A DNA stretch of 63,545 nt, filler included, from Octopus bimaculoides (GCF_001194135.2; 8 parts of 8 records of this genome joined end to end with filler, not necessarily neighbours in it), one strand, 5' to 3'; positions 25,732-41,718 are shown, counted from the whole stretch's first letter. Notes: a model not told the origin generated them from the sequence alone. Numbers and translations: made by a program.

Positions 25732-28700
25732 ATGGAGAAACAAAAAACCATAACACCGGACATGGTGGAGAAATACCTGAACGACCATCCTACTTTCATT
25801 GAAGAGTGGTTGAGTAAGAGTAAAGCTAGAAGTACTTTGGATGATAAATACGTGAGGAAGACACCTAGATTTTCAAGTTATGTGGAAAAAGTGATGATGA
25901 AACAAAAAAGGGAAAAGCGACAGTTGATTAGCTCTCTGGTATCGGAAAACGAGCTTTTCAGTGAGCTAGTCAAAGACATTACCCATGAAATAAATGTGAA
26001 TGATCTGAGTCACAAAATTTTACAGAACATCATTAAATTGACTCACTGTGAACGTGGAAGTTTATTCTTCATTGAAACAATTGCACGGCAGAAGTTTTTA
26101 GTTTCGAATCTATTCGACGTCACTTCCACTTCGGCGGTGACGGAAACTTTGCGACAGAACGAAAATGTTATCAGAATTCCCGTTGGTAAAGGAATCGCTG
26201 GTTACGTGGCCGAAACGAAACAAAAAGTCAATATTGTAGATGCTTACGAAGATTCCCGTTTCAACAAAGAGATTGATGAAATGACTGGGTGTCGAACTAA
26301 GTGTTTGCTTTGCATGCCGATTCTTAATTACTGCGATGAAGTTATAGGTGTCGCCCAAATCATTAACAAATTAGATGGGGAATATTTCACAGAAAACGAC
26401 GAAAAAACATTCAATGACTACTTGTATTTTTGTGGGATTAGTTTAAACAATGCCCAGTTGTTCGCAAAATCAGTTGAAGAATACAAAAGAAACCAACAGT
26501 TACTCAATTTGGTAGGAGACATATGTGCTGAGTACTCAAACTTCATGAGTCTCATTGAAGTCATACTGAGTCGGGCCACAGAAATTCTTGACTGTAGTTA
26601 TGTTTGTCTCGGTCTTTTAACTCCTACCAAAAAAGACGATACGGCAGATAAAGAATTGAATCTTTACGAAATGAAAGACGATAAACTGCAGACTAACACC
26701 ACTAATCCAATCTATAGGAGAGTAGCCATGGATTTCTTACAAAATAAAGATCGTTTATTTATGTACAATGTCAAAAAAGATAGCATATTCGGGGAAGAGG
26801 ATTCATTAATTCTCAACACCAACTGCATCGGCGCAATTGCTTTGTTAGATACGTCTGAAGAGAAAAATGGCTGTATTTTTTTCACAAAAGATTCAACAGA
26901 GTTTTTCAACGAGTCTAATTTTACGACAATGGAAACATTCGGATTATTTTGTGGTTTAGGGATTCATAACTGCCAGATCTGCTGGTCGACAATTAGATGT
27001 TTGGCACAGCAGCAAATATCGCACGAAATTCTGTCGTTTCATACGACAGCCGACGAACGGGAAGTAAACAGATTTCTTTTGATGGACAAACGACCTGCCA
27101 GCGACTATGGCATATATACATTTTCGTTCAATGATCTTTATTATTCAGATGATACAACAGTTATAATCGTCGCCTTTATTTTTCTTGAAATGAATGCTTT
27201 GCAGTTATTGGATATCGAGATGCAATTGCTTTACAAGTGGATACTTACAGTGAGGAAGAACTATCGCCCAGTCATCTATCACAATTGGCGACACGGAGTC
27301 AACGTGACACAAAGTTTTTTCTGTATGTTGACCACTGGAGGTATGAAAAAATATTTTTCTGATTTTGAAATGGTTGTTATTCTTGTTGCTTGCCTTTGCC
27401 ATGACCTTGACCATCGAGGTACGAACAATGATTACGAAGTGAAAACGGCTTCTAAATTAGCTACGATCTACAGCTCGTCCACGTTAGAACACCACCATTT
27501 CGACCACTGTATAATGATATTAAATAACGAAAAAACAAACATATTCCAGAATATTCCGGTCAGTGATTACAAAAATGCAGTTCATCTTATAGAGAAAGCC
27601 ATTCTTTCAACAGATCTCTCCTATTATTTCCAAAACAAAACTAGGTTCGAAGAACTCGTTACTGTGAAGGAAAATTTCGAAGATCCGGAAAGACGGGATT
27701 TATTGCTCGCAATGATGATAACGGGTGCTGATTTGTCGGCAATTACAAAACCATGGAGTATTCAAAAGAAGGTTGCATTACTAGTGGCGGCTGAATTTTT
27801 TGAGTTAGGAGATTTACAGAAGAATGTGCTAAAATCTGAAGTTATAGCAATGCTCGATCGTGAAAAGAGGTGTGAGGTACCAAGATTACAGGTTTGTTTT
27901 ATTGATTTTGTATGCAAAACAGTGTTTGAATCGTTAGAAGCGATAAACAAAAACTTAAAGCCGCTCTTGCAAGGGTGTATGAATAATCGAAGACATTGGC
28001 AAAATATTGTTGACGGTAAAGAAGAATTTGACATCGATATCGAGCTGAACAAAACATTGGCTGGTTTCTTAGATTCAGATGATCCAGAATATGGAGAAGG
28101 TTCAGAGAATGCATCACAAATTACTTCCGGCATGAACTCACAAATTACCGAAGACGTAGAACCGACTACATCACTAACAGGAGGATTTATGAAGCAATAT
28201 GAACGATTTAATGATTCAAAAGAATCGTCTGAAATTCTCGGGAGTTTGGATTTTGATCAGTCTGAATATAATAGTTATTTATCGAGTCCGTCAACATCAG
28301 GAATGTTGTCAGTTGTGTCTGTAGATGAAAGCAAAGATATGAAATCTATGTCCGGTGATGAAAGAAGAGAATTAGAAGGAACTCGTATAGATGTTGAAGG
28401 AGAGGATGTATGTAGAATCATGGGAAATAAGATGAATAAGAAGCATATAACAGGGGGACAGGACATTAGCACAAAATTACATTACATACAACCCATTGAT
28501 CCAATTTTCATGCGTAAGAAAACAAGGAAGACTTGTTTGGACGAAATTGTAGAAGACAGGAAATTGGAAATGGAGAAGAAAAAAATCAACTTAGAACCAA
28601 TTCGAGAAAAAGAAGTGTCCCAAAAGATCAGAAGGGCTTCATATCATGTGATTCCTCCACATACTGAATTAAATAAGAGCATCAGTCTTGTGAAATGTCA

Positions 28701-28868
28701 ATCAGACACATTATGTCGGGAATCCGTCCCTGAAGATTCTTTCGTCTGCGAAGTAAAGTCAGCTGAACAAATGGAAATTTTCAGGGAAAGAAAGAGAAGA
28801 TGCCTGCAAAAGTCTAAGACTGATTCAGAAAACGAGCAAATCGAGAAAAGTGTGGTGTGCGTTATTGC

Positions 28869-28872
<4 letters not shown>
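25732..28872 (+). CDS. PDE-A: intronless GAF-GAF-PDEase cyclic-nucleotide phosphodiesterase (PDE5/PDE6/PDE11 family, probably cGMP-preferring), 1046 aa, C-terminal CaaX (CVIA)
   Basis: Uninterrupted 3141-nt ORF. N-terminal helix VEKYLNDHP; GAF-A (GKGIAGYVAET...DAYEDSRFNKEIDEMTG...CMPI...INKLDGEYFTENDE, intact NKFDE motif); degenerate GAF-B; catalytic motifs YHNWRH, HDLDHRGTNN, LEHHHF, ILSTDL, GADLS, KPWSIQ, PRLQVCFID; about 290-aa tail ending VCVIA*. Confidence 0.96.
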
Positions 28873-28922
<50 letters not shown>

Positions 28923-28945
28923 GCAACAACAACAATAATAATAAT
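28870..28945 (+). repeat. (TAA)n microsatellite starting at the PDE-A stop codon
   Basis: gca TAA TAA TAA... Confidence 0.9.
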
Positions 28946-30533
28946 GTTGATGGTGTTGGTTTCTGTTGACTCTTGCTTTTGTCAGACGGTGGTGGAGAAC
29001 AAACACAGACACAAAGACGCGCGCGCGTTCACACATATACACTCACATACATATATATTATAAAGATCATATAACCCCTTGTGGTATGCTGGAATACCAG
29101 AGAGGGAGCTTAATACCACTCTCTGTCGCTCTTAATCTTACCTTCTACTTTATAAATATAAGTTTCAGATACAAAAGCCTTGTCGTTTGCTTGAAATGGA
29201 AAATGGGATATTCTAGCGTTTATTCTTTCTTACTCCGTGGAATTTACTAATGAAAATGGAGTCTGTTAGTAGGTGGTTGGGGATGAAATATTTACTGGGC
29301 ATAAGAGAAAGGTTAGTCTTTGGAATGTAACCTTAAAGATTGCGCTAAAATCAGATCCTGACAATTTTAAGTAACCGGGATCGAAACGTGAATCTAACCT
29401 CTATTTGTAAAACGCTTTCTTTTCGATCTTCAGAGCATATCACCCTATATTTTAGAAGTGGCTGATGAGAACTTTGGCATTTATTGGTTTTTCTCAAAAG
29501 CAACAACAGACCTTATGAAATGAAGTGAAACAATTTCAAACGAAAATCGAGTCCGGTTTTAGACTCAATTTGATTGGAGTTGATATTTCTATAAATTGTT
29601 CGCGACTGTCTTCCTTATAAAATTATGCTGTTTCAAACAAGGCTCAAAGAAATGTTTTCACAATGGGATGAGGAGGAGGCGAGGAGGAGGTGGCGGAGGA
29701 GGAGGAGGAAGAAGGAGGGAGGAACATGGTGAAAATCCTTGCCATTAATTTGGTGTGGATGGGTAATATCAGATAATTCAATTACAACATATTTAAATTA
29801 AACAAGAAAAAAATTGAAATATTATCATCACTTACATAGAAAAATTGAAATTTTATCTTTCAGTATTTTATAAGGTAAAATCTTAAATTATTGACACATT
29901 ATTAATTATGCCTGGAAAAGTCATGGATTACATGGAAAAATGCGAGCATGAAAAGNNNNNNNNNNNNNNNNNNNNNNNNNNNNNNNNNNNNNNNNNNNNN
30001 NNNNNNNNNNNNNNNNNNNNNNNNNNNNNNNNNNNNNNNNNNNNNNNNNNNNNNNNNNNNNNNNNNNNNNNNNNNNNNNNNNNNNNNNNNNNNNNNNNNN
30101 NNNNNNNNNNNNNNNNNNNNNNNNNNNNNNNNNNNNNNNNNNNNNNNNNNNNNNNNNNNNNNNNNNNNNNNNNNNNNNNNNNNNNNNNNNNNNNNNNNNN
30201 NNNNNNNNNNNNNNNNNNNNNNNNNNNNNNNNNNNNNNNNNNNNNNNNNNNNNNNNNNNNNNNNNNNNNNNNNNNNNNNNNNNNNNNNNNNNNNNNNNNN
30301 NNNNNNNNNNNNNNNNNNNNNNNNNNNNNNNNNNNNNNNNNNNNNNNNNNNNNNNNNNNNNNNNNNNNNNNNNNNNNNNNNNNNNNNNNNNNNNNNNNNN
30401 NNNNNNNNNNNNNNNNNNNNNNNNNNNNNNNNNNNNNNNNNNNNNNNNNNNNNNNNNNNNNNNNNNNNNNNNNNNNNNNNNNNNNNNNNNNNNNNNNNNN
30501 NNNNNNNNNNNNNNNNNNNNNNNNNNNNNNNNN

Positions 30534-30697
30534 CTCGAGATTGCGCGATGCTCGAGATAGCGCGATGCTCGAGAATGCGCGATGCTCGAGAATGCGCGAT
30601 GCTCGAGAATGCGCGATGCTCGAGATAGCGCGATGCTCGAGAATGCGCGATGCTCGAGAATGCGCGATGCTCGAGAATGCGCGATGCTCGAGATTGC
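30534..30697. repeat. CpG-rich 17-bp minisatellite CGCGATGCTCGAGA(ATG/TAG/TTG), about 10 visible units, probably continuing into the gap
   Basis: Directly visible; each unit has three CpGs and an XhoI site. Confidence 0.92.
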
Positions 30698-30699
30698 AC

Positions 30700-31240
30700 G
30701 TATTTGTGCTCCCCGACCAGACTACCAACGACAAGCGCCTACTTTTTCCCTAACACCTTGGCCAAACTCTTAAACTCTGTGTTTAACAGAATTATTGGCC
30801 GAAAATTCCCTAGCAGGTCCCCCATTGTCGGCGTCCTTTCTCAGCAATGTTACTACACCCCGGCTAACAACACTAGGAATTCTCCTGTTCTGTTACCAGT
30901 TACGGTAGACATCTGCCAAGAAGCTGCCAAAAAAATCTGGCATGAAACCATAGAATTTGTAGGTCAGACCATCCAAACCGAGCGATTTGCGACTTGTGCA
31001 ATCACTTATCGCCTCATGTATTCCAGTGGCTATAATCGGCTTTTCGCAGAATCTCGCGTCCATCACCGAGAGCCGTGGTAGGCCGTCTAGGTACGAAGTA
31101 ATGTTTGCTAGCGTCAATCCATCTCCCTTCCCAAACAACCGCGCAAAGAGCAGCTGGAAAGTTGCACACATCTGCTCGGAACCGAGCAGCATGCGTCCGT
31201 CCTGACATATCAAAGACTTGATCGTGGTTTTGTTTCCACG
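30700..31240 (-). mobile_element. Decayed L1/Tx1-clade LINE reverse-transcriptase fragment
   Basis: KSLGLDGLTYKFY...NW*QNRRIPSVVSRGVVTLLRKD...GNFRPIILLNTEFKSLAKVL (RT domains 0-2), with stops. Confidence 0.75.
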
Positions 31241-31494
31241 TCAAGTCTCAACCGTTCGGGCCCATCGGACGGCTTTAGTTCCTTCGTGTTTTAGTGCACG
31301 AGCCTAAGGTAAAGCCTGAAATATAAAGAGGTCCGCAAGTCAAAAAGTTTGAAAACCCCTGCGTTAGAGCACAAAAAACAAACTGTAGTCCAGTTCGGAA
31401 AAAAAGAGTAAAGAACACATTTTGTTGTCCAGTTCATGAAAAACGAAAGCTTACAATGCACTCAAGAAACTTTTCAAACAAATTACAATTTTCT

Positions 31495-31737
31495 TATTTC
31501 CTGCGACAAATAAACTCGCAGAGATATAAGTCAACCATAAAACGGTGAATGCCACAGCGTCGTTTATCACTTCGCATCACAGAGGCCCGTATACTCATTC
31601 GAGTTAATAAACACAACGCTGTAGTTCACCATTCTATGTCCAAAATTATAACCAGCAATTTCAGGAATGTGAGAGTACATCCACAACAAATCGCTGAAAA
31701 TCGTGGTTCCTGGTAGAATCGACTCCCGTATGCATTC

Positions 31738-31740
<3 letters not shown>
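31495..31740 (-). mobile_element. Merlin/IS1595 (ISXO2-like) DDE transposase fragment
   Basis: ECIRESILPGTTIFSD...GHRMVNYS...F and downstream VDLYLCEFICRR match the PGTxIxSD / VNHS / YLxEFxWR pattern; broken by stops. Confidence 0.7.
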
Positions 31741-31791
<51 letters not shown>

Positions 31792-31861
31792 TATTGTTCT
31801 TGTTTATATGTTTCCACTGCTGTGTATATGTTGTTATTGCTGATGCCTCTGTTGTTGTCGC

Positions 31862-32535
31862 CTTTTGTTATTGTCTTCGTCCTTTTCTACTCTAGGCACA
31901 AGGCCCGAAATTTTGGGGGAGTGGGGGCCAGTTGATTAGATCGAACCCAGAACGCAACTGGTACTTAATTTATCGACCCCGAAAGGATGAAAGGCAAAGT
32001 CGACCCTCGGCGAAATTTGAACCCAGAACGTAAAGACAGACGAAATACCGCTAAGCATTTCGCCCGGCGTGCTAACGTTTCTTATTTCTTTATTGCCCAC
32101 AAGGGGCTAAACATAGAGGGGACAAACAAGGGCAGACAAAGGGATTAAGTCGATTACATCGACCCCAGTGCCTAACTGGTACTTAATTTATCGACCCCGA
32201 AAGGATGAAAGGCAAAGTCGACCCTCGGCGAAATTTGAACCCAGAANNNNNNNNNNNNNNNNNNNNNNNNNNNNNNNNNNNNNNNNNNNNNNNNNNNNNN
32301 NNNNNNNNNNNNNNNNNNNNNNNNNNNNNNNNNNNNNNNNNNNNNNNNNNNNNNNNNNNNNNNNNNNNNNNNNNNNNNNNNNNNNNNNACCCAGAACGCA
32401 ACTGGTACTTAATTTATCGACCCCGAAAGGATGAAAGGCAAAGTCGACCCTCGGCGAAATTTGAACCCAGAACGTAAGGATAGACGAAATACCGCCAAGC
32501 ATTTCGCCCGGCGTGCTAACGTTTCTGCCAGCTCT
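31862..32535 (-). mobile_element. Cluster of young family-B SINE copies spanning a gap
   Basis: Near-identical copies at about 31862-32080, 32085-32246 and 32390-32535. Confidence 0.8.
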
Positions 32536-32752
32536 CCGCCTTTTGTCAAGGTCATTGATGTAGCTTTTGTTGTTAATATTTTCATGTCTTCTTTCGTTGT
32601 AGTAGTGGTGGTGGCCGTTGTGGAGTTGTTCTTGTTGTAGTTGTTGCTGAGGTGACAGTTCCTCCACGTGCTTGTTTTTTTTCTTTCTTTGTTGTTTTTC
32701 TTTTTTTTTTTTTTTTGGCGATGTTGATACCGAAACTTTTCCAAATATTGCT

Positions 32753-32802
32753 AATGCTCGCCTGCTTCGCTGACGGACCGGATTCGATTCCCGGCCGATG
32801 CA
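32753..32802 (+). pseudogene. 3' half of a tRNA-Gly(GCC)-like pseudogene
   Basis: aatgctcgcctgcttcgctgacggaccggattcgattcccggccgatgca aligns with metazoan tRNA-Gly-GCC (ctcgcctgccacgcgggaggcccgggttcgattcccggccaatgca); anticodon arm mutated, 5' half missing. Confidence 0.6.
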
Positions 32803-32813
32803 ATTAATTTTCA

Positions 32814-33027
32814 AGACGGTAAGCTGGCAGAATTGGTAGCACACCGGGCAAAATCCTTATCGATATTTCGTCTGTCTTTACATTCTGAGTTCAAAATCCG
32901 TCGAGATCGACTTTGCCTTTTATCCTTCCGGGGTCGATGAAATAAGTACCAGTTACGCACTGGGGTCGATGTAATCGACTAGTCCCCTCCCCCAAAAATT
33001 TCAGGCCTTGTGCCTATAGTAGAAAGG

Positions 33028-33098
<71 letters not shown>
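32814..33098 (+). mobile_element. SINE family B, full length with long (ATT)n tail
   Basis: Complete head-to-tail match to the other family-B copies. Confidence 0.85.
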
Positions 33099-33344
33099 CC
33101 ACTTCTTTCAATTTCGTTTCCATTTCTTACCGAGTGTCTTCCCGACACACAGGGCAAAAAAAACTCACTGTATACAGTGTATGCATTGGTAGGCCATTTA
33201 AGAAAACACACTAGAGTGCTCGTTTACAAAGTCATGTGATAGAAAAAAAAGAGAAGAAAGACAGAGAGAAAAGGATAGAAGAAAAAAGATAAAAAGAAAA
33301 TAAGGTAAGTAATGGAGAAAAGGAAAGAAAATTCAAAGCGACAA

Positions 33345-33760
33345 TGCTCTTCTCAATAGGTGTGACGTGCCAGTTAAGACAATCTTTTGCACTTCCTGCA
33401 TGGGTGGTAAGTCAGGAATCATCCTTAAATAATTTTAAGTTCTCTTTTTCTTTTTATCATTCCAAGTGCTCCTAAAATCATTGGTATTGTAACCGTCTTG
33501 AGATGTCACATCTTTTCGATTTCAATTAGTAGATCTTTATATTTTCTGAGCTTATCAAATTCTTTTAACGAGATATTATGGTCACAAGGTATGCGCACGT
33601 CAATCAATAAGCAAACTTTGTTGTTTTGATCCTTCACAACAATATATGCTTCATTAGCTTTGATGGTCTGATTTGTATGTACTGGGAAGTCCCAAAGAAT
33701 CTTTACATTTTCTCCCTCAGTTACAGCCTCATGGAGGTGCTTGTACCATTTGTCAGCAGT
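33345..33760 (-). mobile_element. Restriction-like endonuclease domain of an R4/Dong/NeSL-type non-LTR retrotransposon, decayed
   Basis: KWYKHLHEAVTEGENVKILWDFPVHTNQTIKAN...IDVRIPCDHNISLKEFDKLRKYKDLLIEIEKM...ILGALGMI...QKIVLTGTSHLLRRAL. Confidence 0.75.
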
Positions 33761-33764
33761 TTTG

Positions 33765-34030
33765 ATTGTATGGTGGTGGTTGGCACTCCGTCGCTTACAA
33801 CGTCGAGGGTTCCAGTTGATCCGATCAACGGAACAGCCTGCTCGTGAAATTAACGTGTAAGTGGCTGAGCACTCCACAGACATTTTCAGATATATATTTT
33901 CAATTAATCTTTTTCCACAAAATGGCCAACACAGGAGTGATTGTAGGAGAAAATGCTTTAGCTTCCTCGTGCTCAAACGACCCCAGTCATGGTAGTCAAC
34001 CGCGTGCGGACCGTCGCCACTCCCATTGAC
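33765..34030 (-). mobile_element. 3' end of another LINE/SINE
   Basis: Minus strand gtggagtgctcagccacttacacgttaatttcacgagcaggctgttccgttgatcggatcaactggaaccctcg...gacggagtgcca followed by short repeats; recalled as a common octopod retroposon tail, not verified. Confidence 0.5.
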
Positions 34031-34079
34031 ATCAGCAAAAAAATCTACGAACAATAAAACCACCACAAACACAATCACC

Positions 34080-36200
34080 AACTAGAACAACAACAATGTC
34101 AACGTCCAAAACAAGACCACTAACACCTGCAGCTCCAACAACTACACTAACAAAACCAACAACAATAATGGTAACGAAATCAGACACAAAAACAACTAAA
34201 ATAATATAACAATCAGCAGCAGTAACGACATCTACATGTAACGCTGACTACTACAATAGTATCAACGAGGAAGACAACAATAATGCTTTTTTATGAAGAC
34301 AGTAACGAGAAAACACAGTCAAAGGAAAGGGCTTCCTTCGTAAATATTACAAATAAATAGATCACACATTCACTGTAAGGGAAAGCGGAAGCCATTAAAA
34401 ATTATCAGAAAAATACTCTCCGACCCGTCATCATGGCACTCCTAGGAGAGGAAAAAATTTGCACCGAAAAAAAAGGGATCAATGATACATAGGTGCATTA
34501 ATCGCACAGAAAGAAAGTTACAATACCCTCCTCCAGCTGAAATAGAAAAATATCTAGAAGTGTGGCCTTCCTAGTTTATATCTAAATATGGAAGGCAATA
34601 TAGGACTGTGGTAGTTATCTGCAGTAACGAAGAGGAAGCGCCGAGAATAGCTACAATGTCATGTTGCTCCGACCAGTTGATAATGCTCCCCTTGTACATG
34701 GGACGCCGGGTAACTAAGGTATCAAGGCCAGGGTTTCAAACGTAACTCCTCATAGGGACCAGGTTAGAGTAATGGCTATGCTAGTGGAGCACAGGGAGAT
34801 AATAATCATGAAAATAAGGCCACAATAAAACAGAACAGGAGTGTCTTCTATCCCACTGTGGGGAGGTCGAGAGAGGTGCCTCACCCTGCACCCCCATTCC
34901 CAACGACAGATCCGTTGCAATCGCAAAGAGGACAGCAGCGGGATCTTTTCTGTTTGGTTGCCACTTTTCAATTTCTTCAATTTTTGTTCCAATTGGTTTC
35001 ATATTTGGTGAATTGGAGTAGTTTTGTAAGCCCATTATTGACGTGAAATTCATTTTTGCCATAAATCAATAAACAAAGAGTTACTAGCTTTTAAGGTTTT
35101 CAAATTTTGGGTAATTTTAGCCAATCGAAAGCCACAAACATAAAGGTGTCTCCTATCTCCATAGTAACAAACGAAACAGTTTGGTTTAACGGCTTGGTTA
35201 AATCAGGCACTTTTTTTTTTTTTGCATAATCGTATAAATTCCCGTGTGTACATACAAATTCGCAAAAATGTTCTCAACAGATAAAAGAGTTATATGGCAT
35301 GTGTAAAGCAGAATTCCGCCAATGACAGATTCCAAACCCTCTTTTCTGACTGGGTAAAAATTATCAAATTATAAATCTCTATAACTTTCTTTTAAAATTT
35401 TTCTGGAAAAAGTGAATTAACCCCTGAGATTCATTGTGGGAAATTACATTAATACACCAAATTTTACAATTTTCACTAAACTAAAATTTCCACAGGTGTA
35501 ACCAAACAGAAAGGATCCAATCCAAGCAACGGTAACTACAACGACAAACACAGGAGCAGATAGAAAAAAGGCTAACGGAAATCCTTCTGACAGAAGGGGC
35601 CTCGGACGAAACAAAAATACCCGAGTAGGAGTCGTCGAGCGACCCCCAAAAAGGAAGAGGAGGAGACGGTGAAAATACTCCCCAATTCCCAAAAGTTTGT
35701 GGGCACAAAGCTGAATAACCCCCAAAAGCGCTGCGCCCAGTCTCGAAACCAAAGCTGCAAACCAACAATTTCGGCAACAACAGCAACAACAAGAGACAAA
35801 CCAACTACAACAGCACGAAGAAGTGAAACAGCATTCTCAGCAACAGCGAGGGGGACACGACAGGATCAGCAACAGGTGTAGCCTAAACAAACAAACAAAC
35901 AAACAAAAACAACCAAACCGACAACAATCGCATCAATCACAAGAGACGGAACTAGTAGAACATCTCTCGAACGAGCCTGTCAACTACACAGTTTTACGGA
36001 AGGAGAAAGAGGAGTTGATGGAGTTTGTAGACTCAAATAAAGACAAAATTTTAACCACCGCCATGTATCGTATTTTGAGGAGACGTTTCCCACATGATGC
36101 GGGAGTTTTCAAAAACTTATTGGACAAAAGGGTATTAAAAGGTCTGTCTAAGGACCCAGAAAAAGACCAACCCAAGACTAGGGTATTCGACTGACTCTTT
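34080..36200 (+). mobile_element. Probable degraded LINE ORF1-like and other transposon remnants
   Basis: Broken, charged, low-complexity reading frames with AAC-rich tracts; family not resolved. Confidence 0.25.
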
Positions 36201-36711
36201 TGTTTCTTTCTCTCGTCATTAGAATGGCAACGGTTCCTGAGTTGGCATTTCACTTGAATTGCCACCTTCCTTCAGTACAAAGAAGTGGACAAAACCATTT
36301 CTAAAAAGAACTTTAGCGGCTTCTTCTTTCACGGCTTAAGTACTTCTAATTAGGTATTTAATGCCACTACAATTTAATACTTAACGATTATTTTTCATGC
36401 AGATATAGTCTCCTTTTAATTAACCTAAATGATTTAAACAAAAAAATATGATGTCATACATTAGAGATTGACGTCATGTTTCCAAAAATCGCCGTTCTTT
36501 TGATGCAAATGCAGATAAAGCATTCTAAAGAATGCAGTTTTGTGTAGATTAAACGGCTAGGTACAAAGATATGAACATCATTGCCATACAAATCATTCTG
36601 GTAAGACAAATNNNNNNNNNNNNNNNNNNNNNNNNNNNNNNNNNNNNNNNNNNNNNNNNNNNNNNNNNNNNNNNNNNNNNNNNNNNNNNNNNNNNNNNNN
36701 NNNNNNNNNNN

Positions 36712-39343
36712 ATTTTCCTCAGACATTTTCTCCTTCGATTTTGGTTCAGTTCTTTCATAGCAGTACTAGCAATCCTTTCCTTTTCTTCGGCGGTCATTCC
36801 ATAAGTGTCACTTTCGTTTAAAATCTCAGATGATTGTTGTTCACTCTTGCATATTTCTTCGTCAGGTTCACGAAGTTCTTTGTCGCAGAACGAGACGTTT
36901 GTTGAAGAAAATGCCGGAAACAATGTACTCATTGGTTCGTTGATGCTTGATTTTCCTTCTGTTCCCTCAGATAACGTCCTATTTTTTCTCAATGATGATC
37001 GGCGTTTTATCGTCTTAGTCAACATTGAATCGTCTTTGAGTTTCAATGACAGTGCTTCTTCTGTTTTAGCTTGTTCTTCTGTTTCATGGAATGATAATTT
37101 TTGCGAAGATATTTTTCGAATACCCTCAGTAAGATCGGTTCCAGTTGAACGCGATTTTACAGGTGAGGATTTGGTTGACAGAATGAAATCACTCAGTTCC
37201 AAACCTGCCATGTTCCAAGCCGTAGGAGATGTAGGACTTAAATTACTAGTGATATATCCATAACTCCCGTCAGACCTAGCGCTTTGAGAACGTTGAAGCA
37301 CTATTGTCTGGATACCTCTTGACTTTGTATCCTTACATTTGTCTACTTCTACAGATAAAAGTTTTGGTGAAGGACTGTCTTTTACTGTCTCTAAAACAAT
37401 AATAGATCCTAATAATCCGATTATACTGGAAGATTTCGGAATATTTTCTTTAAAGTTATCCGTTTGACAGGATTCTTCCCTTGATTCTTTTTTTTCTTTG
37501 ATCTTCGGGAAAATTAAGGTAGTTTGGGTACAAATAGACGTGTTGAAGACCTTATCATGTTCAAAATGGGGAGTGGAGATCTCATCCTCTTCAAAACCTG
37601 AATAGCGTGTGAATTCTCTGTAAGTCTTTTGCATTTCGAAGTCAATATCAAAATCTTCTAAGCCGTCATCTATATTGGACCAATGAATCCTATTTTGTAG
37701 CACCCCTTCATATAGAGGTATCAAACTGTCTTGTACTTCACATAAAAGTTGATAAAGCGGAAAACAAATAGCATCGATGAATGCGATTTGCATTCTCGGA
37801 AGTTTGTATCGATTTTCTCGATCCATAAGAGCTGGAACTTCCTGCTGTAAACCTTTTTCTTCGTCTCCCTGCTCGTAGAATTCAGCTGCAACCTTAACTG
37901 CAATTGACTTTTGAATTTCCCATGGCTTTGTGATACCTGAAAGATCAGATGCTGTCATTAAAATGCTCATTAATAATTCGACACTTTCTTGGGTGTCAAA
38001 TACTTTGTTTCCGCTTTCGAGTTTTTCCTTTAAAACTTCACGTTTTGTAAAATAACCTTGCAAGTCTGTGGCCAGAATGGCTTTCTCGATAACTTTAAGA
38101 CCGTACTTGTAATTCGTATCTGGGAGATTCTGAAATAAATTGGTTTCGGTAGTGTTTAATATCATTAAAGTTCTATCTATGTGATGGTGTTCCAAGACAG
38201 ATGAACTGTACAGTATAGCAAAAGGCGATGAGGTCTTCTCTTGAAATGCATTATTTTTACCTCTATGGTCAAGATCATGAACTAGAGCTGCAATTAATAA
38301 GCAAATCTGCTCTAATTCTGTGAAATATAATTGCATGTGACCAGTAGTCAATATACTAAACATCGCCTGCATAACATTAACAGCATGACCCCAATTATGG
38401 TAAACGTTCAGACGATAATTCTTCCTTGCGGTTAAAATAAACCTGTATAAAATATCAATTGGTAAATCTAATACGATTAACACATTTTTTTCAAGTAACA
38501 TCCGAACACACAAATGAACAGTTTCATCCGCTGTAAATGCAGATTCATCGAAGGCATAGGAATATATATTGTACTCTTCAGATGATCGTGGCACTACTTT
38601 TAAGAAAGGTTCAATAAGTTTTCGGTCGCATGTAGTATGATATGCAAGTAACTCGTTCAAGGCTTCTCGCTGTGTTAACACCCTAACAGAACGTTCATAT
38701 AAGCGACAATTATGAATACTAATTCCACAAATCAATGAAAACGTCTCCATTAGATTGATGTNNNNNNNNNNNNNNNNNNNNNNNNNNNNNNNNNNNNNNN
38801 NNNNNNNNNNNNNNNNNNNNNNNNNNNNNNNNNNNNNNNNNNNNNNNNNNNNNNNNNNNNNNNNNNNNNNNNNNNNNNNNNNNNNNNNNNNNNNNNNNNN
38901 NNNNNNNNNNNNNNNNNNNNNNNNNNNNNNNNNNNNNNNNNNNNNNNNNNNNNNNNNNNNNNNNNNNNNNNNNTCAATTGGTGTTATATATTGCGGATCT
39001 AACGGAACTTCCTCCACTTCTTCTTCATCTTTTAATAACTGGAAAACTGTAGACGATTTCGTCGGAGAGGCCGCATCCACTCTGTTTTCTGTCAAATAAA
39101 CACAAATCNNNNNNNNNNNNNNNNNNNNNNNNNNNNNNNNNNNNNNNNNNNNNNNNNNNNNNNNNNNNNNNNNNNNNNNNNNNNNNNNNNNNNNNNNNNN
39201 NNNNNNNNNNNNNNNNNNNNNNNNNNNNNNNNNNNNNNNNNAACTGATGGCGTTTAAATTCCACTTGTGATATTTCTAACAACCGTTCATTGATTATACT
39301 GATTCCGCAAAACGACAAAAAGTTCAGAAATATATTTTCATCA
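36712..39343 (-). CDS. PDE-B: PDE5/PDE6/PDE11-family phosphodiesterase paralog, partial (N- and C-termini in gaps, two internal gaps)
   Basis: Minus-strand segments: 39242-39343 encodes DENIFLNFLSFCGISIINERLLEISQVEFKRHQ (end of GAF-A); 38974-39108 is the start of GAF-B; 36712-38761 is continuous with YHNWGH, HDLDHRGKNN, LEHHHI, ILATDL, TASDLS, KPWEIQ, AEFYEQGD, LPRMQIAFID and a tail to NRRRKCLRK at the gap. No introns in the sequenced parts. Confidence 0.92.
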
Positions 39344-39444
39344 NNNNNNNNNNNNNNNNNNNNNNNNNNNNNNNNNNNNNNNNNNNNNNNNNNNNNNNNN
39401 NNNNNNNNNNNNNNNNNNNNNNNNNNNNNNNNNNNNNNNNNNNG

Positions 39445-41718
39445 ATTTGTGTTTATTTGACAGAAAACAGAGTGGATGCGGCCTCTCCGACGATATCATC
39501 TACAGTTTTCCAGTTATTAAAAGATGAAGAAGAAGTGGAAGAAGTTCCGTTAGATCCGCAATATATAACACCAATTGACAAAAATTTAAAAAGTATCAAT
39601 ATAATCGATATAATTCGATTACAAAGTGAATCAAAAGACATGTCAATCACTGTTGAAGGTGATGTTGGCAGTTGGTTACTGTGTATGACAATAACAAATG
39701 CTATAAGTAAGGTAGTCGGTTGCATAATATTTGTGAGACATTCCAAAGATGTTTTCGACCAAAGTGACATCAATCTAATGGAGACGTTTGCATTGATTTG
39801 TGGAATTAGTATTTATAATTGTCGCTTACATGAACGTTCTGTTAGGATGTTGGCACAGCTAGAAGTAATGAACGATGTACTGGCATTTCATACTACATGC
39901 GACCGAAAACTTATTGAACCTTTCTTAAAAATAGAGCCACGATCTTCTGCAGAGTACAATTTATATTCCCATGCCTTCATTGAATCTGTATTTACAGATG
40001 ATGAAATTGTTCATTTGTGTGCTCGTGTGTTTCTTGAGAAAAATGCTTTGACCGTATTAAATTTACCGATTGATATTTTATACAGGTTTATTTTAACAGC
40101 AAAGAAGAATTATCGTCCAATTATTTTCCATAATTGGCGCCACAGTGTAATGGTATTTCAAATGATGTTTTATATTTTGACAAGTTCACGAATACAATTT
40201 TATTTCACAGAATTTGAACAGATTTGTTTCCTCATTGCTTCTTTATTGCATGATCTTGATCACAGAGGGACAAATAATGAGTTTCAAGTGAAGACATCAT
40301 CTCCGCTCACTACATTATACGACACGTCTGTCTTGGAACACCATCATATAGATAGAGCTATCAGGATGCTAAACACTGCCGAAACCAATATATTCCAGAA
40401 TCTCTCGGCTAAAAATTATCAGCATGGTCTTAAATTTATCGAGAAAGCGATTCTTGCCACAGATGTAAAAGATTATGATGCAGTAATTAATAGTTTTAGA
40501 GAGATAATCAAAGAGGGAGACAAAGCTTTTGAGTGTCAAGAAAACATTGATTTACTAATAAGCGTTATAATGGCAGCCTGTGATCTTTCAGCTGTTACAA
40601 AGCCATGGCCGTTTGAAAGGAATGCTGCAGTTAAGATTGCAGCCGAATTGTTCGAGCAGGGGGATAAAGAAAAAACTTTACATCAAGATATCGAAGATCT
40701 CATGGATCGAGAAAAAAGATACAAATTTCCTGAAATAGAAGTGGAGTATTTTGATTCTCTATGTGCTCCGCTTTATCAAGTTTTATCTGAAATGGATTCT
40801 AATCTGACTCCTCTGTATGAAGGGGCGTTGAACAATCGAAATCACTGGGCAGATATAGTTGAAGGTGTCAAGTTTTTTGACATTGATTCCGAAATTGAGG
40901 TTATTTATAATGAAGAACTGAGTTGGAAAGAAGCAAAAGATCACAGAATTGCAACACCTAAAATATCACCAGGCATTCAGTCTGAAAATGCTGCGTTAGG
41001 AATGGCAACATCGTCTACTCAGACTACTTTTGTTCTCGCTGAGTTAAATGAAGCAAGTCTACGACAACGTCAGAAGATATCTCAAACGGACGATGATTTA
41101 ACTTCAACGTCTCATTTCGAATCTCGTGCTTTAACGAACGCCATGAATAGTTTTTATACTGAAAAACTTCTCGCAGTAACGATAAAGCCAATGGGTAAAA
41201 GAATCCGAAAAATTAATATAGGGACGCAAGTGAAATTTTCAAATGGTTATAGTGAGACCTCTGGCCACTCTGCATTTCCTAGTAGAAGCACGTCCTTTGA
41301 ACCATCCAAAGCATTTTCAGATTCACGGATAAAAACAAAGACATCCGCTACAAGCATGTATCTCGATGGAGCAGAAGCAGCGATGAGTGATGAGTCTGCT
41401 CAAGAATTACTGAAGTTAGCTACTTCTTCGATGGACTTAAGTAGCTGGGCAGCTTCTAAGATAACATTAGAAACGTCTGAACAAAAGCTGAAAACTTTGA
41501 CACCTATGATCTCTAAACATACGGTAGACAATGTGGAAAAATATGCAATGAGTGCAGAAGAAAGGGAAAAAATTTCTAGTATTGCAATGAAAGAACTCAA
41601 TCAAAGTCGAAGAAGAAAATGTTTAAGGAAAATTCCACTGTGTAAACCAATTGCTACAAGCATGAAAACCAAAAGGCCGGACGATTTTATGAAAAAGTAT
41701 GTGTGTACGATTTCATAA
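39445..41718 (+). CDS. PDE-C: PDE5/PDE6/PDE11-family phosphodiesterase paralog, 5'-partial, altered purine pocket, C-terminal CaaX (CTIS)
   Basis: The frame is open from the gap edge (ICVYLTENRVD...), so the TTG start in the ORF track is not the real start. Degenerate GAF-B; FHNWRH, HDLDHRGTNN, LEHHHI, ILATDV, AACDLS; tail ending KKYVCTIS*; AATAAA at 41783-41788. Confidence 0.93.
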   Translation: MCVYLTENRVDAASPTISSTVFQLLKDEEEVEEVPLDPQYITPIDKNLKSINIIDIIRLQSESKDMSITVEGDVGSWLLCMTITNAISKVVGCIIFVRHSKDVFDQSDINLMETFALICGISIYNCRLHERSVRMLAQLEVMNDVLAFHTTCDRKLIEPFLKIEPRSSAEYNLYSHAFIESVFTDDEIVHLCARVFLEKNALTVLNLPIDILYRFILTAKKNYRPIIFHNWRHSVMVFQMMFYILTSSRIQFYFTEFEQICFLIASLLHDLDHRGTNNEFQVKTSSPLTTLYDTSVLEHHHIDRAIRMLNTAETNIFQNLSAKNYQHGLKFIEKAILATDVKDYDAVINSFREIIKEGDKAFECQENIDLLISVIMAACDLSAVTKPWPFERNAAVKIAAELFEQGDKEKTLHQDIEDLMDREKRYKFPEIEVEYFDSLCAPLYQVLSEMDSNLTPLYEGALNNRNHWADIVEGVKFFDIDSEIEVIYNEELSWKEAKDHRIATPKISPGIQSENAALGMATSSTQTTFVLAELNEASLRQRQKISQTDDDLTSTSHFESRALTNAMNSFYTEKLLAVTIKPMGKRIRKINIGTQVKFSNGYSETSGHSAFPSRSTSFEPSKAFSDSRIKTKTSATSMYLDGAEAAMSDESAQELLKLATSSMDLSSWAASKITLETSEQKLKTLTPMISKHTVDNVEKYAMSAEEREKISSIAMKELNQSRRRKCLRKIPLCKPIATSMKTKRPDDFMKKYVCTIS

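Follow-up and report, generated by a model that had tools for sequence, protein, structure and literature searches.

Gene content of the locus

Three genes for class-I cyclic nucleotide phosphodiesterases, here called A, B and C, lie at positions 25732–41718 of a 63,545-nt stretch of Octopus bimaculoides DNA. This stretch, filler included, is referred to as the window; its part with the three genes corresponds to chromosome CM046624.1 (GCA_001194135.2) at approximately 10.40–10.42 Mb, with window position 37319 falling at chromosome position 10,418,409. An original prediction, made from the sequence alone, had proposed that the three genes are paralogs without introns, and both points stand. 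Pfam finds the PDEase_I domain in A, B and C (E = 3e-78, 7.5e-77 and 1.7e-70; 263, 259 and 238 bits, all above the curated cut-off of 24.8), and no sequenced coding part of any of them contains a stop codon or needs an intron. In protein sequence A is 30–35% identical to B and C, while B is ~50% identical to C; the three are true paralogs, not assembly duplicates. Together they would form the first three members of a tandem array of intronless, C-terminally prenylated, GAF-regulated cyclic GMP (cGMP) phosphodiesterases.

Gene A (25732–28872, plus strand) is a complete intronless coding sequence, a continuous open reading frame (ORF) of 3141 nt encoding 1046 amino acids. Its product consists of an N-terminal region, a GAF-A domain with the motif NKx5Fx3DE (reading NKLDGEYFTENDE), a degenerate GAF-B, the PDEase_I domain, a tail of ~275 residues and a terminal CaaX box, CVIA. 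Pfam places a GAF domain at residues 90–237 and a complete PDEase_I domain (PF00233) at residues 516–748. The protein is 92% identical to that of O. vulgaris and 87% identical to that of a third octopod. It shares a 90%-identity protein cluster with O. vulgaris CAI9740184.1 and O. sinensis XP_029650743.2. The former is a 1193-residue model (OX597837.1, retrieved locus L004, 10001–33626) that spans 23.6 kb and seems to be an annotation artefact in which gene A is run together with N-terminal sequence of the O. vulgaris gene B1; because of this fusion, a 206-residue O. sinensis fragment clusters with gene A.

Gene B is represented by three pieces, all written on the minus strand. The main block (36712–38761; coding sequence 36714–38759, 682 codons) covers the end of GAF-B, a linker, the catalytic domain and most of the tail, and its DNA is 87% identical to either of the two O. 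vulgaris B copies. A 135-nt GAF-B piece lies between two gaps at 38974–39108, in frame with the main block across 212 N, and a 102-nt piece at 39242–39343 holds the end of GAF-A (39242–39342 translates as DENIFLNFLSFCGISIINERLLEISQVEFKRHQ); the latter is 96.9% identical to O. vulgaris B, compared to 92.7% for C. The first internal gap (38762–38973) measures 212 N where O. vulgaris has 188 nt; the 24-nt difference preserves the reading frame. The second (39109–39241) measures 133 N against 102 nt, so that the frame as written is off by one, the N length being an estimate. Both gaps fit an uninterrupted coding sequence. The possibility that 38974–39108 is the same DNA as C 39444–39578 placed twice was rejected, since the two differ at 3 of 135 bases, indicating a separate copy and not duplicated reads, and B/C similarity is high in this part in both species.

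Gene C (39444–41718, plus strand) runs from the middle of GAF-B to the stop codon, comprising 757 codons in a frame that begins at 39445, and contains the catalytic domain, the tail and a CaaX box, CTIS. An ordinary AATAAA follows ~65 nt past the stop. Its N-terminus and GAF-A fall in the gap 39344–39443, into which the frame runs open, and the O. vulgaris ortholog is one intact ORF of 1026 codons. A splice acceptor for C at 39450–39461 ('tttatttgacag') was considered and rejected: the frame continues upstream (ICVY) into sequence that can be aligned to A and to C of O. vulgaris, where the ORF is unbroken. In total ~290 N-terminal codons of C and ~220 of B are missing from the O. bimaculoides assembly. 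The GAF region of B and C present within the window is thus confined to the end of GAF-A (in B) and part of GAF-B, with the remainder in gaps. A tandem GAF region with the NKx(n)Fx3DE motif in GAF-A is present in A, and the full region is present in the O. vulgaris B2 and C orthologs.

Orientation of gene B

The genes had been predicted to lie in the orientation +,−,+, a layout that is probably a product of scaffolding. The B block is bounded on either side by a 100-N join. At the left edge (36612–36711), which swallows the last ~30 codons and the stop of gene B, the flanking sequences are not colinear with O. vulgaris. The sequence abutting this join (36226–36611, plus strand) is a promoter-type segment paralogous to the sequence directly upstream of B and C; it matches the O. 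vulgaris regions upstream of B1, B2 and C at 86.8%, 86.5% and 89%, in the plus sense in every match, and stops at the join. As a plus-sense match to B/C upstream sequence, it cannot be the natural 3′ flank of the adjoining minus-strand block, and the two sides of the join, which brings the 3′ end of B against this segment, are not continuous. At the right edge (39344–39443) two truncated genes meet head to head, the GAF-A end of B (39242–39342, minus) facing the middle of GAF-B of C (39445, plus), and these sides are likewise not continuous.

The O. vulgaris locus (L004), which has no gaps, carries A, B1 and C on one strand. The minus orientation of B rests only on the two 100-N joins and is therefore unverified. 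Most likely the 2.6-kb B block has been wrongly oriented, or dropped into a gap within C, by a scaffolding error. A real +,−,+ layout, in which B was inverted in O. bimaculoides and a divergent promoter region is common to B and C, is doubtful, although it is the arrangement written in the assembly and the O. vulgaris array has members on both strands. Besides the joins at each end of the block and the plus-sense promoter-type segment at its 3′ end, it would require that ~1.5 kb of coding sequence for the N-termini of both genes, and any spacer as well, fit into a single gap. It also sits poorly with O. vulgaris, where B1 and C share a strand, and with O. sinensis, where B is followed by a remnant of the C tail on B's strand.

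Constraint on the three genes

The metal-binding and catalytic residues (PDE5A H613, H617, H653, D654, H657, E682 and D764) are kept in A, B, C and all other cephalopod copies. In gene A every catalytic and cGMP-selectivity residue is retained, and the ratio of nonsynonymous to synonymous substitution (dN/dS) relative to O. vulgaris is 0.17 in the core and 0.27 in the tail, which marks A as the constrained, conserved 'housekeeping' member on sequence grounds. In B the ratio is 0.42 in the core (P = 1e-4, below 1) and 1.2 in the tail (not significant); in C it is 0.47 in the core (P = 3e-4, below 1) and 1.89 in the tail (P = 0.025, above 1; alignment-sensitive). Analysis of dN/dS by domain had been suggested together with the original prediction; it supports constraint on all three cores but not on the tails of B and C.

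Under neutral decay, 7–10 stop codons would be expected in B or C on the lineage, and none is seen (P = 4e-5 and 9e-4). Open frames without the expected stops, together with constrained cores, indicate that B and C are maintained genes with rapidly changing tails and not pseudogenes. It has to be considered whether they are instead dying copies, that is processed or duplicated pseudogenes, leaving A as the sole working gene. Such decay would be consistent with the overall dN/dS of B and C (0.74–0.80) and with tails at or above 1, with the deletion of most of C in the O. sinensis assembly, with the loss of an invariant glutamine in C, and with frameshifts in O. vulgaris B1 and O. sinensis B. 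These frameshifts are different 1-nt deletions ~30 nt apart (L004 33570–33600 and L005 10600–10640), and O. vulgaris B2 is intact. Nevertheless the explanation is unlikely, given that the frames remain open for 682 (B) and 757 (C) codons here and for 1108 and 1026 codons in O. vulgaris, where decay predicts 7–10 stops per lineage, and that both cores evolve significantly below a ratio of 1. In addition, all metal ligands are retained, the four pocket changes of C are conserved between two species, and the CaaX box is retained in C here as well as in C and B2 of O. vulgaris, the C-terminus of B falling in a gap.

In the O. sinensis assembly (CM016882.1; L005 13578–16621) ~4 kb containing most of gene C is absent relative to O. 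vulgaris, and only the C tail follows B, a pattern that unequal exchange or a collapsed assembly could produce.

The glutamine switch of gene C

Divergent pockets and tails had been anticipated for these enzymes, and both were found: the pocket is altered in C, and the tails diverge in all copies. Four pocket changes (Q817E, Q775E, F820Y and Y612F in PDE5A numbering) occur in C alone and are identical in O. bimaculoides and O. vulgaris. The first of these affects the invariant purine-recognising glutamine, which A and B retain and which 338 of 343 aligned PDE domains possess, but C of both species has Glu there. As Glu replaces the glutamine switch that reads the purine, the substrate preference or activity of C has probably changed. 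Glu at this position is also present in a mollusc PDE10-like group (P0197, Ostrea edulis 'pde-5'; P0204, Nucella lapillus; P0235), which provides independent precedents for the substitution.

Size and distribution of the family

The cluster extends beyond the three genes originally described. There are at least six copies in O. bimaculoides and at least seven in O. vulgaris, as found by an exhaustive representative search with C, cluster look-ups and locus retrieval; a profile built from aligned A, B, C and D retrieved the same non-cephalopod list as a single query and did not return the octopus paralogs. Just beyond C, outside the window, O. bimaculoides carries the single-ORF genes F (XP_014782381.1, 1060 residues) and G (1091 residues), on the plus strand 5.6 kb and 15.6 kb past C. 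Copy E (XP_014774802.2, 973 residues) is dispersed, ~677 kb away at 11.084 Mb on the chromosome (L008 10001–12922). On either side of it is a gene model with an OATP (solute carrier) domain, and it possibly lies inside an intron of one OATP gene.

In O. vulgaris A, B1, C, B2 (1108 residues, intact) and three near-identical D copies (1135 residues) are found on one chromosome, and in O. sinensis D is followed by B. The O. sinensis locus L005 was considered as the ortholog of the O. vulgaris A–B–C locus and rejected, being orthologous to the D–B2 segment in L012. Argonauta hians has two tandem single-ORF copies. A further single ORF, of 1184 codons, 45% identical to A and with no CaaX box, is carried by contig ctg120600l of ENA ERZ21867824 (260 kb; L011 10268–13819). 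This contig contains no octopod repeats and its PDE5/6-like gene groups with the octopod clade at 100% bootstrap, and it may come from a non-octopod cephalopod. A scan of metagenome contigs returned only sequences 27–54% identical, none nearer the cephalopod clade. The intronless coding state is seen for A in three octopods, for C and B2 in O. vulgaris, for D in O. sinensis and O. vulgaris, for E, F and G in O. bimaculoides, for the two Argonauta copies and for the ENA contig copy.

Several copies share sequence outside the coding region. B and C share upstream regions, E and G share ~500 nt upstream of the ATG, and O. vulgaris B1 and B2 form a 4.7-kb duplicate that is 97% identical. Shared upstream regions and a near-identical duplicate of this length fit spread of the family by DNA-level duplication. 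Within O. vulgaris, B and C hardly differ in their 5′ halves, with a synonymous divergence of 0.18 compared to 0.80 in the catalytic part, indicating gene conversion.

Family assignment

The genes had been described as PDE5/6/11-type; a prenylated PDE5/6-like identity is supported and PDE11, which gives lower scores, is not. Against solved structures, gene A scores 498 bits to human PDE5A, 414 to PDE6C, 304 to PDE2 and 209 to PDE10, and identity to solved PDE5 and PDE6 structures is considered to fix the PDE fold. Its best database relatives are 'cGMP-specific PDE-like' proteins of bivalves, gastropods, annelids, cnidarians, hemichordates and insects (in the last as 'phosphodiesterase 6'). Members of the array score 481–694 bits to the oyster PDE5/6-like protein, 421–569 to octopus PDE11 and 373–496 to fish PDE5, and the divergent Argonauta copy Ah2 scores 354, 298 and 263 bits to the same three. 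Since every cephalopod copy scores highest to the oyster protein, the family is assigned to the orthogroup of prenylated invertebrate PDE5/6-like proteins, in which it represents the cephalopods, and not to PDE11.

A CaaX box is present in A (CVIA), C and O. vulgaris B2 (both CTIS), D (CVIC or CVVC), F (CVIS) and one Argonauta copy, and absent from E, Argonauta Ah1 and the ENA contig copy; in this survey the C-terminus of gene B falls in a gap and the end of G lies outside the retrieved locus. Nearly all outgroup PDE5/6-like proteins, from anemones and other cnidarians to starfish and hemichordates, also carry a CaaX box, and prenylation is predicted.

Origin of the intronless genes

The contrast that the original prediction drew with many-exon relatives is borne out. 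PDE5A is encoded by a many-exon gene. The Tegillarca ortholog, from a bivalve, encodes 860 residues in at least 17 separate coding blocks across 41.9 kb, and the gene for octopus PDE11 (872 residues) spans 293 kb in O. sinensis.

Relationships were assessed with neighbour-joining trees of 684–747 columns and 200 replicates. All cephalopod copies form one clade (100% bootstrap) in the PDE5/6-like group, with the ENA contig copy branching first; A is then sister to all remaining copies (100%), and B and C are a late pair (100%). The Argonauta copies are nested in Octopus subclades, where they pair with D (99.5%) and with E and G (93–96%). A single fully supported clade of intronless copies fits one intron-loss event, and the position of the Argonauta copies indicates that the duplications and the intron loss predate the Octopus/Argonauta split. 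The intron loss probably also predates the split of octopods from the lineage of the ENA contig. A recent origin is not compatible with these duplications. A copy made fairly recently by retroposition from a multi-exon PDE5, PDE6 or PDE11 gene still present in octopus, and duplicated locally into three, would explain why the coding sequences are intronless and the genes close together, but it is very improbable: the paralogs are just 30–35% (A to the rest) to 50% (B to C) identical, the nesting of Argonauta makes the duplications old, PDE11 is the only canonical GAF-PDE found in Octopus and is not the closest relative, and the copies number at least six, not three.

A phylogeny had been proposed as a means of finding the multi-exon parent; it gave the single clade described above, but no parent in cephalopods. 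A search with the oyster protein had no cephalopod protein among its best 120 matches (at least 50% identity, more than 10 phyla), and the best 120 relatives of gene A likewise included none. The cephalopod copies are 30–43% identical to the oyster protein, compared to 51–56% for those of coral, fly and amphioxus. From this we infer that the multi-exon parent was lost in cephalopods, so that 'retrogene replacement' fits better than a retrocopy beside its parent.

In the proposed sequence of events, the ancestral PDE5/6-like gene (the Pde6 of insects and 'sperm PDE5' of sea urchin) had ~20 exons; in an early cephalopod its mRNA would have been reverse-transcribed and inserted into the genome, this insert would have become the working copy, and the parent would subsequently have been lost. 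The single-exon gene would then have been multiplied by tandem and segmental DNA duplication, with later gene conversion and rearrangement, while its sequence evolved unusually fast. Taken as a whole, and including the scaffolding error around B, the reading in which a single ancient retrocopy replaced its parent and then spread by DNA duplication is the best explanation and is considered probable. Of the earlier proposal that a retrocopy was kept and duplicated, the intronless single clade and the local DNA duplication are thus retained, whereas neither retroposition scars nor a multi-exon cephalopod parent was found.

The introns might instead have been lost without retroposition of a whole mRNA, by stepwise deletion or by gene conversion with cDNA, in which case the array would still occupy the ancestral locus. 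This would be in keeping with the lack of both retroposition scars and a separate parent locus. It is nevertheless an improbable course of events, as the loss of all ~20 introns at once, in a genome whose sister gene spans 293 kb, is most simply explained by a reverse-transcribed copy, and conversion by cDNA is itself mediated by reverse transcriptase.

Several points weigh against the replacement of the parent by an ancient retrocopy, or against the layout and maintenance of the array that accompany it. Loss of the parent rests on protein databases and on the lists of the best 120 matches, DNA-level searches not having extended to any squid, cuttlefish or Nautilus genome. Neither a poly(A) remnant nor a target-site duplication was found after A or C, and the stop of gene A runs directly into an (ATA)n microsatellite. 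Without such scars retroposition is inferred and not shown, although in copies that are old and 30–50% identical the marks would have decayed and their absence says little. Expression of A, B and C is putative, and the Logan contigs could be DNA or RNA. The neighbour-joining placement of the clade within the PDE5/6-like group, on a long branch, has 42% support. The deletions in O. vulgaris B1 and O. sinensis B may represent decay in some lineages, or assembly indel errors, and the O. vulgaris array includes members on the opposite strand.

Predicted function and significance

The conserved residues suggest that each protein of the array would form dimers and detect cGMP by means of GAF-A, break cGMP down at a two-metal HD site that is intact, and be tethered to membranes by its prenylated CaaX tail, gene C having altered nucleotide recognition. 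A germline or sperm role had been put forward for the array. An O. sinensis gene of the same product name is testis-specific in gonad RNA-seq (13.9 versus 0 fragments per kilobase per million, FPKM; PMC11202624), which hints at testis-biased expression of one octopus gene. The sea-urchin ortholog is annotated as a sperm enzyme. A role in the male germline is plausible.

The proteins belong to a known enzyme family and were already predicted in RefSeq. The literature searched for octopus or cephalopod PDE retrogenes or intronless PDEs contained no description of the array family, and the gene history looks new relative to that literature. PDE5/6-like enzymes determine how much cGMP is present in sperm, in muscle, in kidney-like organs and in sensory cells, and the gene has been kept at 51–69% protein identity from corals to amphioxus. 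More speculatively, cephalopods may have discarded this ~20-exon gene and rebuilt its function from one retrocopy that radiated into at least six or seven fast-evolving, membrane-anchored enzymes; C, with its Glu switch, may have come to recognise another substrate or ligand, perhaps in male germ cells.

The combination of intron loss, parent loss, acceleration and multiplication would constitute a natural experiment in the takeover of essential functions by retrogenes, in the division of an old function among members of a tandem array, and in how far a cyclic-nucleotide pocket can drift, as in the Glu-for-Gln change of C. The array also provides a defined set of genes for sperm signalling and for chemotactile or neural cGMP pathways in cephalopods. 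Assemblies and annotations of the locus are unreliable, given the probably misjoined B block in O. bimaculoides, the apparently fused A–B model in O. vulgaris and the frameshifts in B in two assemblies.

Flanking and intergenic features

Upstream of gene A, a putative promoter and 5′ untranslated region (25220–25731, plus strand) is conserved in three octopods. Approximately 390 nt before the ATG are as conserved as the coding sequence among the three, and are colinear without sign of a 5′ intron. A perfect palindromic cyclic AMP response element (CRE), TGACGTCA, is located at 25352–25359, ~370 nt upstream of the ATG, and is identical in all three. A CRE-like sequence, TGACATCA, follows at 25371–25378, 19 nt away (start to start), with 1–2 bases changed in the third octopod.

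The window DNA is ~36% G+C and has abundant microsatellites and repeats resembling short interspersed elements (SINEs). Gaps at 29956–30533 and 32247–32388 lie between genes, within repeats. A minisatellite with a 17-nt unit (CTCGAGAATGCGCGATG, ~9–10 copies) at 30534–30734 emerges directly from the first of these, and the 578-N gap probably conceals further copies. A ~400-nt SINE-like repeat forms an inverted pair at 22639–23022 and 24494–24936 (91% complementary), occurs more than 10 times in the 43-kb O. vulgaris locus and is also present in Argonauta. Transfer RNA and Rfam scans gave no match, including for this repeat, and Pfam scans of four intergenic ORFs resembling transposon remnants gave no matches. 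The (ATA)n microsatellite (28869–28945) begins inside the stop codon of gene A, and its complement, (TAT)n, occurs 4 kb downstream at 33028–33098; the orthologous gene A contig of the third octopod likewise ends in (ATA)n.

Comparison with known systems

Retrogene replacement has been described for amphioxus SYCP1 (PMC5803294), and intron-less teleost opsins are an example of a tandem family seeded by a retrogene (PMC10339062). The cephalopod array would resemble them in that a single-exon copy supplants a multi-exon parent and may then duplicate. It would differ in the kind of gene, a ~1000-residue, ~20-exon signalling enzyme that is strongly conserved across animals, and in its history, an old event that left no scars and after which the family grew to at least six or seven members.

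Human PDE5A (PDB 9lss, 3bjc) is the best solved relative of gene A (E = 6e-148), and both its cGMP-binding motif in GAF-A and its whole catalytic domain align with A. Unlike A, PDE5A has no CaaX box; the GAF-B of A aligns poorly to it, and C has Glu at both glutamine positions. The catalytic subunits of vertebrate PDE6 (PDB 6mzb, 6x88), of which PDE6C is the second-best match at 414 bits, share the GAF–GAF–catalytic arrangement and C-terminal prenylation, the latter being predicted in the array. PDE6 regulation is defined by an inhibitory gamma subunit that is reportedly absent from invertebrates, a published survey having found no genes for it there (PMC4906994), and the array is not assigned to vertebrate-type PDE6. 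PDE11 (octopus XP_014785065; insect Pde11) belongs to the same GAF-PDE superfamily and is 34–42% identical to the array, but it is a separate conserved gene with lower scores than the PDE5/6-like proteins, and the O. bimaculoides assembly has it and the array on different chromosome-scale contigs.

The closest likeness is to the invertebrate PDE5/6-like group itself. The layout is the same, with an N-terminal region followed by GAF-A, GAF-B, PDEase_I and a tail that terminates in CaaX, and the metal ligands and the equivalents of Q817, Q775, A767 and F820 are present in A, and also in B except for Gly at A767. The cephalopod genes differ in having no coding introns, in contrast to the multiple blocks of the bivalve gene, in being many instead of one, and in carrying longer, fast-evolving tails.

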